64,000 nt of DNA from Vitrella brassicaformis CCMP3155 (taxonomy: Eukaryota; Protista; Chromerida), in assembly GCA_001179505.1 (NCBI GenBank), contig CDMY01000385.1, positions 248,001 through 312,000 on the forward strand, in the 5' to 3' direction. The notes below the pieces were generated by a model that worked only from the letters and a program-made list of their open reading frames with translations, was not told where the DNA came from and did no database searches. A program made the translations under genes and the position numbers. Below, one piece after another: positions 12,557-43,016 of this stretch (position 1 is its first letter; every line of letters starts with the position of its first letter).

Positions 12557-13008
12557 GCCGATGCGCCTCTCGCCGACCAGCAGGGCTGCAGGGAGGAAGC
12601 CAGGCCGACCTCCTGGGGCGCTTTCACCACTAAGAGCCTCGCTTGCAATGGCCAATGATGGATGCGAAGAGGGTGGGAGATCTGGGCCCGAGAGCGAGGT
12701 CGGTGTGGATGAGGCCGCCTGGCGGTGGGAACGTTGGGAGCGTTGCGTCGCAAGAGCCTCCTACCGCATCATGGTGGTGCTGGTGTGATGGTTGAGATGA
12801 GAGATCTGATGCAGCAGCTCGGGAGGTAGATCCAGGGCGGCCTTGCCGAGGAAGCGTTGTTGGTCAGCGCCCTCCACGCTTGCCGCGAGCAATGGAATGC
12901 TCTTCTCTACTGCAGTGGTCCAAATGCCGTGCGCGAGAGAAATGGCCAAAAAAGGAGCGATGAGGATCGTAAATCCACAACGATCCTCGCCGCGTAGGGA
13001 GCGGGGCG

Positions 13009-14209
13009 ATGATGATGCGACGCATTTGCAGCAGCTTTGCCGCAGCTTGCCGCTATGGCCGTACATCAGCACCATCTCCATTCCGCATCTCAGGACCACC
13101 CTTCCGCTTCCTGTCCACACTCGCCGCCAAGCCCCTCCTCCGCTATCGCGAGGCTGCTGGATGCCTGTCGCTGGTCAATCAGGACAGGCGGCCCCTGACC
13201 ACCCCTCAAATCGTCGGCCTCATCGATGGAGAGGGATGCTTCACGTTGTACCGGGTTCGCAAGGGCCTCTACCCAGATTTCAGACTTGCAATGAACATGA
13301 AGGACCTGTGCCTTCTGGAGCGTCTGCAGAAGTCCCTGGGTGCGGGGCACCTCTACCCGCATATGCAGAACAACCTTATTGGCTACGAAGTTCGACTGAA
13401 AGAGCAATGTCGCCGGCTGGTTGAGGTGTGTGACGCCTTCCCGCCGCTGACGGTAAAGGGCTCTGACTACGCGAGATGGAGGGAGATAGTGCTCATCCAG
13501 CAGGAGAAGGGGACGGTCGCAAGTCGCAATGAGTGCCTTGCCATTGCTGAGAAGATGAATCGTGGCCGCCCGCATGGTGCTTCGACTGGCCTGGAGCTCT
13601 TCCACGACAGCAGCAGCATCAGGGAGGATGAGGTTCTGCAGTGGCTGTCGGGCTTCATCGCTGGAGAGGGCTGCTTTTTTTCCGAGCGTAAAGTACTAGA
13701 CACAGTTGTCGGGTTCGCGCTGGAGCAGCATGCAGCAAAGTGCGAGACTGATATACTTCCTTCGGGACTTTTTCGACATCGGCCGAATAAGTCAGCACCA
13801 AAACATGGCTCGTTGGGCGGTTGATCGGCGAGATGACAAGCGAAGACTGATCTCCCTCTTGTCCCGCTGGCCTCCTTTTGGCTGCAAGCTGGTGGACTTC
13901 ATCCACTGGCGCAGCTTCATTGAGGACAGTGACGAAGCCATGAAGATGCACTGCAGCAGGTGGAGACAGCATTTTGATTGGGAGCTGTATGACCCAGCTG
14001 AGTCCCACCTGGCCTGGTACACGTGCAAGTATACCCACTTTCGATCAGATGTGCAGAGAGACAAACTCAGTACCTGGCGGAGGGGCGGAAGCGAATCAGG
14101 GAGGAACGCAAGAGAGATATGCATGATGCGGATGGACCACAGGGCACTGAATGAAGATGTGTGTAGTGCTGGTCAATCAGATGACATTTGCACAAGCTCA
14201 ATTAATTGA
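13009..14209 (+). CDS. Double-motif LAGLIDADG homing-endonuclease/maturase-like protein with N-terminal organellar (mitochondrial-type) presequence; +1 frameshift near 13732-13739
   Basis: Motif 1 is IVGLIDGEGCF, followed by DFRLAMNMKDLCLLERLQKSLGAG and PPLTVKGSDYARWRE. Motif 2 is WLSGFIAGEGCF, followed by FALEQH. The remainder, LIYFLRDFFDIGRI...PPFGCKLVDFIHW, continues in the next frame (13706-14209). No introns. Confidence 0.85.
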
Positions 14210-14343
14210 TTTCATTCATCTGTCGATGTCCACGCACCCGTCCGTTCATGCATCAGTCCCGCACCTACGCAAGGCAAAAAGCAGCGACCACACCCACACC
14301 GACACGCACCAACACCAGCCCGCCCCCCAGCCCCACCATTAGT

Positions 14344-16549
14344 CTACTCATCATCCAAATTAATGGCAGTGTCGATGGAGACCCCCCTGCCATCTCTCAC
14401 AGCAGGGCGCCGCGGCATACCCACAGGCGGCGGCCCCACAATGGCAGATTCACTGTACTGTGGGTATGCCCCGGATGAGACCTTGGGCCACTGCCACTGC
14501 CCCGCACCACTCAACCCAGCAGCCGCCCCCATCGGCTGCTGGCCAGGCCGCAATGGTCGTACCTCGAACATCGTTTGCCCCGGAAGAGGAGGCCCGAAGG
14601 CCGGCGGACTGTCTGGAGCGATGCCCCGCCCCGCTCCACCCACGCCGCTCCGCGACAGGCCAGACATGGTCCCCTGAGGACCAGCGGCAGCCTGACGTGT
14701 GCCTTCTTGACGTATGATGAGTCGGTCAGTGTCATCAGCCTCCCTCCCGCTCGCTACGGGGTTGAGGAAGGGAGGCACCTCAGGCAGACCCTCATCACCG
14801 GGGCGGAGGGGAGGGGGGCGCCTCGCGGCAGCAGCAGGAGGCGGGGCTTGTTTGGGTGGCGGAATGGGGGCCAAGGGCGGCCAAGCGTGTCTGGGTGGGG
14901 GCCCGCCCTTGGGTGCCGGCGGGGGTCCGCCCTTGGACTTTGGCGGAGGGCCCTTGGGCTTGGCCGCTGGTGGCGTCTTGGCTTTTGGGTGAGCGGGGGG
15001 AGCCTTGACCTTCTGCTGGAGCTTAGGAGGGTTCTTGGCCTGCTTCTTGCCCTTGGCCTGCGCCTTCTGCTTGGCTCGACCCGCACGGCTGTCTGGTGTG
15101 GGTGGACGGCTGCCCTGCCGCTGCTGCTGCTGCTGGTGCTGCTGGTGGCGCGCTTTCTTGGACTTGGGCTGCCCGTGATGCTGCTCGGGCTGGCTCGACT
15201 GCTGCAGCTGCGGGGGATTCTTCGGGCGCCAATGCTGCGAACCCGCCGGTTTCGGGGCAGCAGCACTCGGCCCGGCACTGCACGTACACAGACACACCCA
15301 GAGATACATACAAACACACGACCATGAGCGTCCCCTGTTTCGCCTCACTTGTGCTGCTGGCCGCCAAGGACAGGCAGGTGGAAAGAGGGTTCCCGTGCGG
15401 CCGGTGTGGGGCTCCTCTTTCGCTTGTTCTTCCTCTTGCCTTTCCTCGGGGAGCCAGGAGGGGGCGGCTCGCCGGGCATGGGACGGCCGGGAGGCTGTAC
15501 CTTGGCCGATGGCGGTGGCGGTGGCAGGGGCGCCAACACGGGTGGCGGCCTCCACTGGTTCGGAGGGGCTGGGGGCCTGGGTTGGGGGACGACGGGTGGT
15601 GCTCGGACCTCTGTGGGATGGCGAGGCTTGGGCGTGTGTCTAGCCGCAGGTGAAGCAGCTTTAGCGGCAGCAGGTGGCGGCTCGACAGCCGGCGGCCGCT
15701 CCCCAGACCTCCTCACCTCCAGTGGAGGGAAGAGACTTGGGAGTGAGGGGAGAGACTTGAAGTGCTCCTCGAGGCACCGCTGCTCGGGGCTGATGGTGTA
15801 ATCGAGTGTCTCGTCCTGGCAGGCCACCTCCGTATCAGTGCGCACTTGGGCTGGATGGGGGTATCTGAGCAATGTCTGCTTGACCGCATGAGGAAGCAGA
15901 TTGCGCCGCTGGAGTGCCGTGTACAGCCCGTGGGTCCTCTCGTAATGATCCACGGACACTTGGCACCGCTCGCGGATGGTTGGGCCGTCGACCATGGCCG
16001 TGTCACAGGGCGGCGCTGAATGAGAGCGGTAGTCCTTGATGGCCTCCTTGACCGCCGGCTGATGGGCGAGATGGACGAGAAGAGAGAGCGCCTTGCGGGA
16101 CACCCGGATGCCGCGCTGCTCCCACAGGCCCTTCTCGATGGCCGCCAGAGGGTCAGGCACATCCCCTTGCTGCTGCTGCTGCTGCTGCTGGCCCTCTCCT
16201 CGCTGCTGATCCACGGCCGCGTCGCCGCCCCGGTCCCTGCCGCTCCTCTCCTCCGTGCCGCCTCTAACGACCACCCCCTCCCCCGTGCCCCCCTTCTCCT
16301 TCGATTTCTCACCCTCTACAACAGCAGCATCCTTGCCACTCTCTGCCACCGGGTCCGCTCGCTGCTGACCACCAGTACCTCCGGCCGCCGCTGCTGCCGG
16401 CTCCATTCGCCCCTCCTTGACGGCACCAGCAGTGCTACGGTCTGCATCCAACACGGACACACACACGCGAATACAACGAAGTCCTGCACTTGACATGTCT
16501 GGCGGCCCACCTCACCTGGTGATGGTGTCACCCTTGCCGCTCCCGCCAT
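14344..16549 (-). CDS. Pro/Gln/Lys-rich hypothetical protein, 3 exons
   Basis: Exon 1 (MAGAARVTPSP) splices in frame to DRSTAGAVKE... and then via aa|t to NAGPSAAAPK.... The stop is at 14344. Mostly low complexity. Confidence 0.65.
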
Positions 16550-16932
16550 GCCCGCAATAGGTAGAACCCTCTCTCCTGGTCCTGGTGTGTCCGCACCACG
16601 AGGCGATGGCGCCTTGCCTTTGGGCTTGGGTGCGGCCGGGGGCCCCCATCGACTTGCGCCGAGGACTACACCCATGAGACCCCGCCTGGGCTCTTTGCCG
16701 ACTGGACGGGAAGGCTGCATGCGGGATTGGCAGCGAGGACCAAAACCGGCAGATTCCGCCGTATCCTCAGTGACACCACCTGGCCTTCATCCTCTATGTC
16801 TGTGAGGTGAGATCTTCCGCCTTAAAACAACTTAAAGAGCTGCACCGATGCGCCCTCACGACGAAAGTGTGCGATTTGCCCCGACTGCAAGCTGAGCTCG
16901 CACTTGGCAAGAGCTCGCACAAGGAGGAGAAA

Positions 16933-40434: not shown

Positions 40435-43016
40435 ATGGGGCGGTGGCTGAATGTGGACATCATTGTCAACGATTTGCTGTACGTCTGCAAAGCATGCCTA
40501 ATCATCACGGGTGTGTGCGTCGGCGGGCTGTTCTTCATAACAATAGGATGGATAATATGGCCGGTCAGTCAGCACGCACACAGTTGTCACATCAATCAGG
40601 GACGCCAGAGCCCTCAACACGACTCTTCTGTAGCTCTGTGGACTCTGTGTTGTCATTTCCAGGTGATTTATGTCGTGTCTGAGGCTCTCTGCTACTGGAG
40701 ATGGCGATACCGACTGGCGCTGCTCAAGTCCCTCCCCCCCTACCGGCCGCCCGTCAGCCAGGAGTGGATCGAGATGTGCGAGACGGCCATGCTGGAGGAC
40801 CACACGGCCGAGGAGCTGCGGATGCTGCTGTATTATTGCTTCTACTGTGTCTGGCCGGAGCAGATCGGCCGGAGGGACGTGGAGAGCTTCTTCATGTACC
40901 ACTTCCCCACGTCATGGGAGCACATTGAGTGGTTTGTGGACCAGCTTGAGGACAAAATGGGTCAGTTAGCGCGGCAGAGGGGAGAACAAGGGCTCGCAGA
41001 GCCGACAAAGGATGGATGAGCAGTGAATGGATACATACGTGTGGGTGTGGGCGATTGCTGCCATGTCATTCATCGGTTTGCAGGCATCCGTTTCCCTCAT
41101 GTTCGAAGCACGACGATTCCGTCGCAGTGTCCGCGGACGGGCGACCCCATGCTGTTGCAGGACGCCTATTCGCGCATCCACGGGTACCGATTCGGTATCC
41201 ACCCCATCAAGGCCATCTACCGGCCCCTGCCGTTCCTCATAGCCATCAACCTGTGGCAGAGCTTCAGCCTATGGATACTCAAACGATACGGATTCAAGAC
41301 ATACGAGTAAGTAAGCAACGGACGGAGGGAGGGAGGGAGGGAGGGAGGGGGCAAACAGGGCGGGCACTCGGTGGGATGGATGGATGGATGTCTTGGTTTT
41401 GGCCGGTGTGGTTGGTCTGCTGGGGCTTCTTGTGCAGAGTGCCGACGAATCAGTTTGTGCGTTTCCACATGTGGATGCCGCCGAAGCACTTCGACGTCCG
41501 GCGCGACCGAGAGCGCAGTGTGCCAATCGTCGTCCTGCACGGCCTCGGTTTCGGCCTCATCAACTATGTCTTCCCCACACTCAAGCTCATGCAGCTGATG
41601 CGCACTCAGTCCCCACGGCCCCGGGGCTACGGCCGGCGATTCGCCCCGGCCCCCGTGTGTCCTCGGCCGGTGATCGTGTGCGAGATGAGCATGATCGGGG
41701 GTTATCCCAGCGGTGTGGCCGACTTCCGGCAGCTGCCGACAATGCCCCAGATCGCCCATTATGTGGCCCAGTTCGTCTACGCCCACTTCTCGCCGCCCAC
41801 CCCATTCGTCCCGGAAGAGGAGTCCGAGACCATCGGCGGGGGTGGTGCCCTGTCGATCTCCCTCCCCCATGGGCCATCACCTGGCTGGGAGGACGTCAAG
41901 TCCGCCCTCACAGGCACGGCATCGACGGCCATCGGCACGGACTCTCCGTCGCCTCTGTCGTCGGTGGTGTCGCCCCACACGGATGCCGAGGGGGAGTTGC
42001 AGAAGCGGGGGACGTTCTTCAGCGCTCACAGTGGCACGCTGACGACTCAGAACACTCTGGACGAGGACAGCCCGACACTGCGGCGGCGTGAGGAGGTGGA
42101 GAGGCAGAGGGAGAAGAAGCGTCGGGCTGAGGAGGCCCGGTCGCTGTTCGGGTGCGGCTATCGCAGGAAGCGCCAGGTGGACAAGGAGGAGGAACACGTG
42201 GCCACGCTCCGCTTCGTCCCCGACCACCGGAGAAAGGGCGTACACATGGATGTCGTCTCACACAGGTGAGGTGCACTCGGGTAGTGAGTGGGAAAAGGGC
42301 TCGCTCGCTTTGCTTGCTCATCTTATCTTGCTCGTCGCGCTTCTCTCTCTCTCTCTCTCTCTCTGTGGGGGGGGGGGGGGGNNNNNNNNNNNNNNNNNNN
42401 NNNNNNNNNNNNNNNNNNNNNNNNNNNNNNNNNNNNNNNNNNNNNNNNNNNNNNNNNNNNNNNNNNNNNNNNNNNNNNNNNNNNNNNNNNNNNNNNNNNN
42501 NNNNNNNNNNNNNNNNNNNNNNNNNNNNNNNNNNNNNNNNNNNNNNNNNNNNNNNNNNNNNNNNNNNNNNNNNNNNNNNNNNNNNNNNNNNNNNNNNNNN
42601 NNNNNNNNNNNNNNNNNNNNNNNNNNNNNNNNNNNNNNNNNNNNNNNNNNNNNNNNNNNNNNNNNNNNNNNNNNNNNNNNNGGGGGGGGGGGGGGGTCTG
42701 TCTTATATTTATCAGTTTCGGCACGGCGATAACGTCGATACTGCAAAAGCAGTACCCGTCGTTGATTCGGCGGTGTGTGCTGGTCGACCCCGTATGTTTT
42801 TTCGTGCTGCCCTTGAAGAAGGCGCAGCTGGGGTACCTCTACCCCTGGGAGATCAACCTGGTGGACCCACCTCACGGGAGGGGCAAGGGGCTCTTCGCCC
42901 TCATCAGGAGACCCCTCGAGAAACTTTATGACTTCAGGTCTGTCACTCAGGAGACGGCAGGCATTCAAATATCTGTCTGTGGGGGATGCATCGCCGGAAG
43001 AAAACCATGGATGGTG

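Follow-up and report, generated by a model that had tools for sequence, protein, structure and literature searches.

Positions 13009-14209 of the DNA analysed here, a 64-kb stretch of Vitrella brassicaformis CCMP3155 (about 248001-312000 of the 452,855-bp record CDMY01000385.1; hereafter the window), most likely hold a young pseudogene in this reference strain. We consider it probable that this sequence derives from a nuclear gene of the I-OnuI type that has no introns, and that this copy of it lost its function recently; intact members of the family would be mitochondrial proteins that cut DNA. A first-pass annotation had proposed a nuclear, domesticated LAGLIDADG protein with a mitochondrial-type leader. 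This proposal agrees with our results at the level of the gene family, given the omega values (0.32 over the ancestral frame and 0.13 in the N-terminal extension), the ORFs from Alphamonas edax and the lack of a signal core. It does not apply to the window copy, which carries two indels seen in reads, whose sole close paralogue is decayed, and for which no transcript-derived ORF was found in the protein collection. The interest of the locus lies in the family and in a possible intact allele in nature.

Locus and genomic setting

The ORF at 13009-13824 is the annotated 271-aa protein of V. brassicaformis CCMP3155. The adjoining gene calls are nuclear in type, some with introns, and include members of the UreD, violaxanthin de-epoxidase and uricase families. 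The ORF has 57% GC and 68% GC3, matching its surroundings. A contaminant contig had been considered in the first-pass annotation. Because the contig is Vitrella DNA with intron-containing neighbours and nuclear-like GC, a contaminant or organellar contig as the source of the locus is excluded. The gene lies between nuclear genes and not on organellar or phage DNA. Neither a group I intron nor an intein was evident around it in the Pfam matches (LAGLIDADG alone) and the neighbouring gene calls, the two sources on which this earlier claim is upheld. The gene is colinear with its relatives in the family alignment and has no intron-sized inserts, in agreement with its description as intronless. 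The Vitrella mtDNA gene content in print (cob-cox1, cox3 and rRNA pieces) includes no LAGLIDADG ORF (PMC8554336). No additional copy of the gene was found inside the 64-kb window. In one kilobase of the window, 42001-43000, GC falls to 42%, compared with about 58% for the rest.

Broken reading frame of the window copy

The reading of 13009-14209 as one gene frame could not be retained. The stretch consists of two ORFs, one in frame 1 (13009-13824, 271 aa) and one in frame 2 (13706-14209), with domain 2 split between them. DNA alignment of the window copy against its paralogue defined two lesions, a surplus A and a 4-nt deletion (Table 1), which leave the window copy without an uninterrupted reading frame. 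The ancestral frame comprises 382 codons and ends at the TGA listed in Table 1. The stop of the earlier reading, at 14207-14209, closes a frame that is wrong over its last 46 codons. The 271-aa product ends within domain 2, so that a two-domain active site would be unable to form. The public models of the window locus (271 aa) and of the paralogue (216 aa) are shortened readings of frameshifted genes.

Table 1. Features of the LAGLIDADG locus, in window coordinates
Feature	Position	Strand	Remarks
Unit common to both copies	13005..14258	+	DNA alignment, blastn; begins 4 nt before ATG
N-terminal extension, codons 1-66	13009..13206	+	Arg-rich, amphipathic start, RFL|S at residues 33-36, then REAAGCLSL motif
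LAGLIDADG domain 1, intact	13210..13491	+	Pfam PF00961, 65.2 bits, E 1.1e-17; PDB alignments
First helix, IVGLIDGEGCF	13210-13242	+	Catalytic Glu codon 13231-13233 (Glu 75, GLIDGEG)
Second LAGLIDADG helix, LSGFIAGEGCF	13645..13677	+	Catalytic Glu codon 13666-13668 (Glu 220, GFIAGEG)
Lesion 1, one surplus A in A-run	13737..13739	+	GCAGCAAAG vs GCAGC-AAG in paralogue; +1 shift mid domain 2
Remaining domain 2 and start of C-terminal extension	13739..14068	+	Readable in frame 2 only
Stop of annotated 271-aa product	13822..13824	+	Reached out of frame after lesion 1
Lesion 2, 4-nt deletion	14069..14070	+	Paralogue AGGCAA, metagenome AGACAG, both Arg-Gln; back to frame 1
Ancestral C-terminal tail, YLAEGRKRIREERKRDMHDADGPQGTE	14071..14154	+	Frame 1; ancestral stop TGA 14152-14154; paralogue and its MMETSP ORF alike

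Over 13575-14041 and 14041-14500, the contigs of two further Vitrella DNA runs (X1 and X2) agree with the window sequence at every base and show no alternative form, and a 4736-nt contig of X1 and X2 supports the deleted form at 14069/70. Since the longest contigs in X1 and X2 reach 225 kb and 35 kb, these runs represent genomic DNA. X1 and X2 possibly overlap with the data used for the assembly; their contigs nevertheless exclude a simple assembly slip as the cause of the lesions.

If the gene were functional as first read, the frame changes would have to be assembly errors, or be bypassed by programmed frameshifting, editing or a tiny intron. Such a reading is supported by the homology that runs straight across the break, by an ancestral frame without stop codons and by the position of the surplus base in a short A-run. 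However, both lesions and no alternative are present in the contigs of the two further runs, and two separate bypasses of opposite sign would be needed. An intron would have to fit a stretch of about 125 nt that is open in frames 1 and 2, and its removal would delete conserved residues. Moreover, the paralogue reads the same place in one frame without the surplus A. We regard a functional window gene as very unlikely. A 7-nt GT..AG stretch at the frameshift was also considered as an intron and was rejected as far too short.

Paralogue, duplication and selection

The paralogue (protein model CEM08671.1) lies 134 kb downstream of the window copy in the same orientation. It has lesions of its own: domain 1 has lost 9 and 27 nt without a change of frame, and a 16-nt deletion just past the second GEG breaks the frame. 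When the surplus A was set aside and the 4-nt gap was left open, both copies comprised 382 codons with no internal stop and the same TGA end. Comparison of the copies over this ancestral frame gave a dS of 0.363, a dN of 0.115 and an omega of 0.32 (bootstrap 95% interval 0.22-0.44), compared with omega values of 1.2 and 1.5 when these columns were read in either of the two wrong frames. Constraint is strongest in the N-terminal extension, whose 66 codons show 5 non-synonymous and 12 synonymous changes (omega 0.13). Because omega is low and the ancestral frame has no internal stops, both copies were protein-coding over most of the period that followed the duplication, and the breaks are recent. 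The dN/dS comparison suggested in the first-pass annotation indicates purifying selection between the copies, yet both copies are frame-broken.

The sequence shared by the two copies extends little beyond the ORF. After the stop, they are about 60-70% identical over roughly 100 nt, and then the homology fades. The read contigs of the paralogue depart from the window sequence at 13005 and at 14154. By blastn and DNA alignment, the flanks of the two copies are unrelated. At a dS of 0.36, co-copied flanks should remain recognisable; thus, the copied unit measured about 1.25 kb. The duplicate may have arisen by retroposition of a short-leader mRNA, but no trace of a poly(A) tract can be seen. Homing into a common target was also considered as a route and is not supported, because the flanks of the copies are unrelated.

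The window segment 13858-13899 is matched by another X1/X2 contig over these 42 nt only. They code for LSRWPPFGCKLVD, the most conserved part of domain 2. The flanks of the match in that contig are dissimilar and are absent from the window, the paralogue locus and L002. These foreign flanks indicate a third genomic locus with a fragment or a divergent copy.

Several of these features would also be expected of a selfish nuclear element of the homing type, similar to yeast WHO or HO, which acts on nuclear DNA, spreads as an ORF-sized unit and decays, its basic N-terminus being incidental. The duplicated unit is the ORF plus about 100 nt only, both copies are decaying independently, a fragment is present at a third locus, and the gene is intronless among intron-containing neighbours. 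The tail GRKRIREERKR resembles a nuclear localisation signal, and the WHO elements, as described in the accessible part of PMC7282813, provide a precedent for free-standing homing genes in the nucleus. In contrast, the flanks of the copies share nothing, which gives no common target site, and the N-terminal extension is under the strongest constraint and is basic in all family members. Only two copies and one fragment were found, and there is no Hint or intein domain. A selfish nuclear element is quite unlikely in our opinion.

Family and relatives

Searched exhaustively with HMMER, a set of 1.84 billion representatives gave 907 hits at E up to 0.001. The best match after the paralogue was P0003 (E 1.9e-24, 35% identity). 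The A. edax transcriptome is the source of both P0003 (416 aa) and P0012 (382 aa), each a complete ORF. A. edax, a predator related to malaria parasites, is a colpodellid inside the chromerid-colpodellid group (terms as in PMC10304595 and PMC6733595). Alphamonas cultures contain prey, and the origin of these two transcripts is assumed from their grouping with Vitrella. Two further members, P0010 and P0031, are ORFs on separate contigs (38 kb and 14 kb, 47-48% GC) of one ENA assembly. These contigs appear to come from an uncultured eukaryote; they have few gene calls, and these are fragmentary, which is the pattern that eukaryotic DNA should give. In the ENA gene call of P0010 (L003:10001-11062), codon 6 is an in-frame TGA translated as Trp; with the standard code, the probable start of the ORF is the Met six codons further on. 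The P0010 contig stems from a 2x long-read assembly and has a CA microsatellite just upstream of the ORF. Among the 20 of the 150 best HMMER matches that were looked up, most were metagenome proteins.

In a tree of 108 double-domain proteins, the two Vitrella copies, P0003, P0012, P0010 and P0031 form a clade with an SH-aLRT of 99 within the I-OnuI-like enzymes. The branch of this six-member clade is 0.85 long and has no supported sister in the tree. The HMM search and phylogeny suggested in the first-pass annotation have placed the closest relatives in A. edax and in an uncultured eukaryote. The six members are colinear over their full length in the family alignment. All six have a basic N-terminal extension of about 35-90 residues, a small R-x-A/C-G-C-x-x-L motif ahead of domain 1, and the helices GLxD(A/G)EG(C/S)F and SGFxxGEG(C/S)F with the catalytic Glu kept in both. 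They also share an MNxxRP linker, a PPFGxK motif and a C-terminal extension of about 70 residues. In the four intact members, Pfam identifies two LAGLIDADG_1 stretches apiece and no other domain.

Word-index protein searches with the 271-aa product, the family alignment and the 110-aa frame-2 piece returned only the paralogue and its transcript ORF; in the alignment search, 8000 candidates were scored and known members were missed. Our literature search found no article linking LAGLIDADG with chromerids or colpodellids; among the papers searched, PMC13421374 alone contains both LAGLIDADG and Vitrella, each once. The gene family appears not to have been described previously.

Domains, active site and fold

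Both helices reported in the first-pass annotation, each with its catalytic Glu, are present, and both Glu residues align to the catalytic positions of I-PnoMI. The Pfam LAGLIDADG_1 match covers residues 68-161 of the window product. The frame-2 piece covers positions 38-100 of the LAGLIDADG_1 profile with 22.9 bits, against a cut-off of 23.1, and it also matches residues 203-256 of I-AabMI. The equivalent domain 2 piece of the paralogue scores 30.7 bits. The two-domain arrangement is therefore seen in the ancestral gene but not in the encoded 271-aa product, domain 2 being present in the DNA but split over two frames. Pfam gave matches to LAGLIDADG families only, with no Hint, intein or PPR domain in the window gene or the family.

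The closest solved structures to the window product are I-PnoMI (E 2.3e-18), I-OnuI, I-SmaMI and I-LtrI. Compared with I-PnoMI, the beta1-beta2 hairpins are about 7 residues shorter. The AlphaFold model of P0003, an Alphamonas member and not the window product, has a pLDDT of 80-95 over residues 79-366 and contains the alpha-beta-beta-alpha-beta-beta-alpha fold twice. In this model, a confident long helix opens the C-terminal extension, and the N-terminus is of low confidence with one helix. The top 50 Foldseek matches of the model are all of the I-PnoMI, I-LtrI, I-SmaMI or I-OnuI type, with target-normalised TM-scores of about 0.75 to these four enzymes. The best structural matches are intron-type enzymes and not PI-SceI.

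A kinship with fungal mitochondrial intron enzymes, together with the breaks in both Vitrella copies, might be taken to mean that the locus is a dead relic with no host function, such as a nuclear insert of organellar DNA, a horizontally acquired intron ORF or a contaminant contig. This explanation is opposed by the 452,855-bp Vitrella contig with its intron-containing genes and nuclear base composition, and by an omega of 0.32 over a dS of 0.36 between the copies. The N-terminal extension is of host type, and the family is common to Vitrella and Alphamonas. In addition, only three proteins are encoded by myzozoan mitochondrial genomes (PMC9550989). A relic of this kind is highly improbable.

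N-terminal extension and possible targeting

The leader noted in the first-pass annotation was confirmed: residues 1-47 contain 8 Arg, 1 Lys and no Asp or Glu, with an R-3 motif at residues 33-36 (RFLS). The start of the leader has a hydrophobic moment of 0.56. The maximum 15-residue hydropathy is 0.65, and this computation detected no hydrophobic signal-peptide core in the N-terminus. Leader-like composition is not rare in this GC-rich window, where it recurs in 3 of the 158 ATG-started ORFs (about 2%). The REAAGCLSL motif of the window copy aligns with the Alphamonas and ENA members. Import into the complex plastid of Vitrella requires a signal peptide. Because the leaders are basic, acid-free, constrained and without the signal peptide needed for the Vitrella plastid, we infer that the intact family members may be imported into the mitochondrion. 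Colpodellid plastids are reported to have no genome; the mitochondrion would therefore be the sole nucleic-acid organelle left in Alphamonas. For the basic C-terminal tail, a nuclear localisation signal is an equally good reading.

Expression

We found a transcript ORF for the paralogue. In an MMETSP transcriptome, the 135-aa ORF P0182 matches the second half of the paralogue with 100% identity, beginning at an internal Met; this match shows that the paralogue is transcribed. The second half of the paralogue is open from about L001:10603 to the stop after 11094 (locus L001:10001-11094). Since P0182 is labelled complete and not 5'-partial, the paralogue transcript probably carries the frameshift of the paralogue. 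For the window copy, no transcript-derived ORF was found in the protein collection, where the 110-aa frame-2 query matched only the paralogue product. The 271-aa model has genome-derived sources only in that collection, and the frame-2 ORF is absent from it. No run registered as RNA contains the stretch of the gene; the RNA-like run X14 covers 14227-14500 only, at the 3' end of the neighbour. The X14 contig ends at 14227, which is the probable 3' end of a proline-rich neighbour on the minus strand (called at 14344-16720).

Possible function of the intact members

The results can be combined in the following model. The ancestral gene had 382 codons and encoded a cleavable-looking basic N-terminal extension, two LAGLIDADG_1 domains that both keep the metal-binding Glu, and a family-specific helical C-terminal extension. 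It was duplicated as an ORF-sized unit, purifying selection then acted on both copies over most of their separate history, and each later gained its own frame-breaking indels in the CCMP3155 lineage. In organisms with intact members (Alphamonas, the uncultured eukaryote and possibly wild Vitrella alleles), the protein would be imported into the mitochondrion, where its two beta-sheet saddles may bind a long, specific nucleic-acid site. Loss of the catalytic acidic residues is common among pure maturases. Because both catalytic Glu are kept in all six members, the intact proteins most likely cut DNA rather than act solely as an RNA chaperone.

Alternatively, the family may be a maturase-like factor for splicing or processing of mitochondrial RNA and not a DNA endonuclease, which we find rather doubtful. 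Nuclear LAGLIDADG proteins of plants work in organellar RNA splicing, according to the accessible part of PMC9275481, and in Vitrella the fused cob-cox1 transcript and the fragmented rRNAs need processing (PMC8554336). The shortened beta1-beta2 hairpins would also suit such a role. The conservation of both catalytic Glu in all six members argues against it, and group I or II intron-like elements have not been reported in alveolate mitochondria (PMC8554336).

Comparison with known systems shows in which respects the Vitrella family differs from each of them. The enzymes I-OnuI, I-LtrI, I-SmaMI and I-PnoMI (PF00961, from fungal mitochondrial group I introns) are alike in having two LAGLIDADG_1 domains in one chain with a Glu ending both helices, in fold (TM-score about 0.75 for the family model) and in sequence (E-values to 2e-18). 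Unlike these enzymes, the Vitrella gene is nuclear and free-standing, with basic N-terminal extensions of 35-90 residues and C-terminal extensions of about 70 residues. The Vitrella family also has shorter beta hairpins and a long separate branch, and its window copy is frameshifted. Plant OTP51 is likewise a nuclear gene for a LAGLIDADG protein with an organelle-type leader, taken as domesticated from homing endonucleases. It has degenerate LAGLIDADG motifs and acts on a plastid group II intron in organellar RNA splicing. The Vitrella family, in contrast, has no PPR tract or other domain, retains the catalytic Glu in both helices and lacks any known intron on which it could act. Yeast ENS2, listed in the first-pass annotation among the nuclear derivatives, is mitochondrially encoded. 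The HO and WHO genes of yeasts, according to the accessible part of PMC7282813, are nuclear, free-standing LAGLIDADG-type genes with multiple decaying copies per genome, as in Vitrella. However, they are derived from inteins and contain Hint and zinc-finger parts, none of which was detected in the Vitrella gene, and no shared target flanks were found for the two Vitrella copies.

We know of no enzyme that has been identified for the scrambling or recombination of myzozoan mtDNA. If the preferred reading is true, a conserved nuclear LAGLIDADG family that is catalytically equipped and carries mitochondrial-type leaders would be a concrete candidate for this recombination. Apicomplexan, dinoflagellate and chromerid mitochondrial genomes are scrambled and recombinogenic, and Vitrella mtDNA, with cob-cox1, cox3 and rRNA pieces, is in a scrambled, probably recombining state (PMC8554336, PMC9550989). 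In these two sources, the myzozoan mitochondrial genomes reported have no group I introns or obvious homing sites, and no group I or II intron-like elements are known from alveolate mitochondria (PMC8554336, PMC9550989). One could speculate further that an active, nuclear-encoded LAGLIDADG nuclease persists in chrompodellids and in wild Vitrella carrying an unbroken allele, that it enters the mitochondrion and drives, by site-specific breaks, the fragmentation and recombination typical of myzozoan mtDNA, and that its repeated loss of function in the cultured strain reflects a cost. We consider this extension unlikely.

A wild version in sediment metagenomes

DNA nearly identical to Vitrella over 12700-14500 is present in marine-sediment metagenomes of 2025 from one study (X10, X12, X13 and X15). 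Contigs of X10 are identical to the window flanks. An X10 contig over 14041-14166 has one base difference and four extra bases, CAGA behind 14067, so that it reads AGA CAG (Arg-Gln). This insertion was found in X10 only; the GCAA insertion at the same site stems from the paralogue. The X10 contig without the 4-nt deletion has the 3' flank of the window type, and the deleted junction at 14069/70 is not in any X10 contig. The simplest reading is that the X10 version is an allele of the window locus without lesion 2; the coverage of X10 excludes 13676-13797, and thus the site of lesion 1. The sediment metagenomes are a source of wild Vitrella alleles. The pair of Vitrella copies represents a case of very recent, independent decay in which a less broken version persists in the environment.
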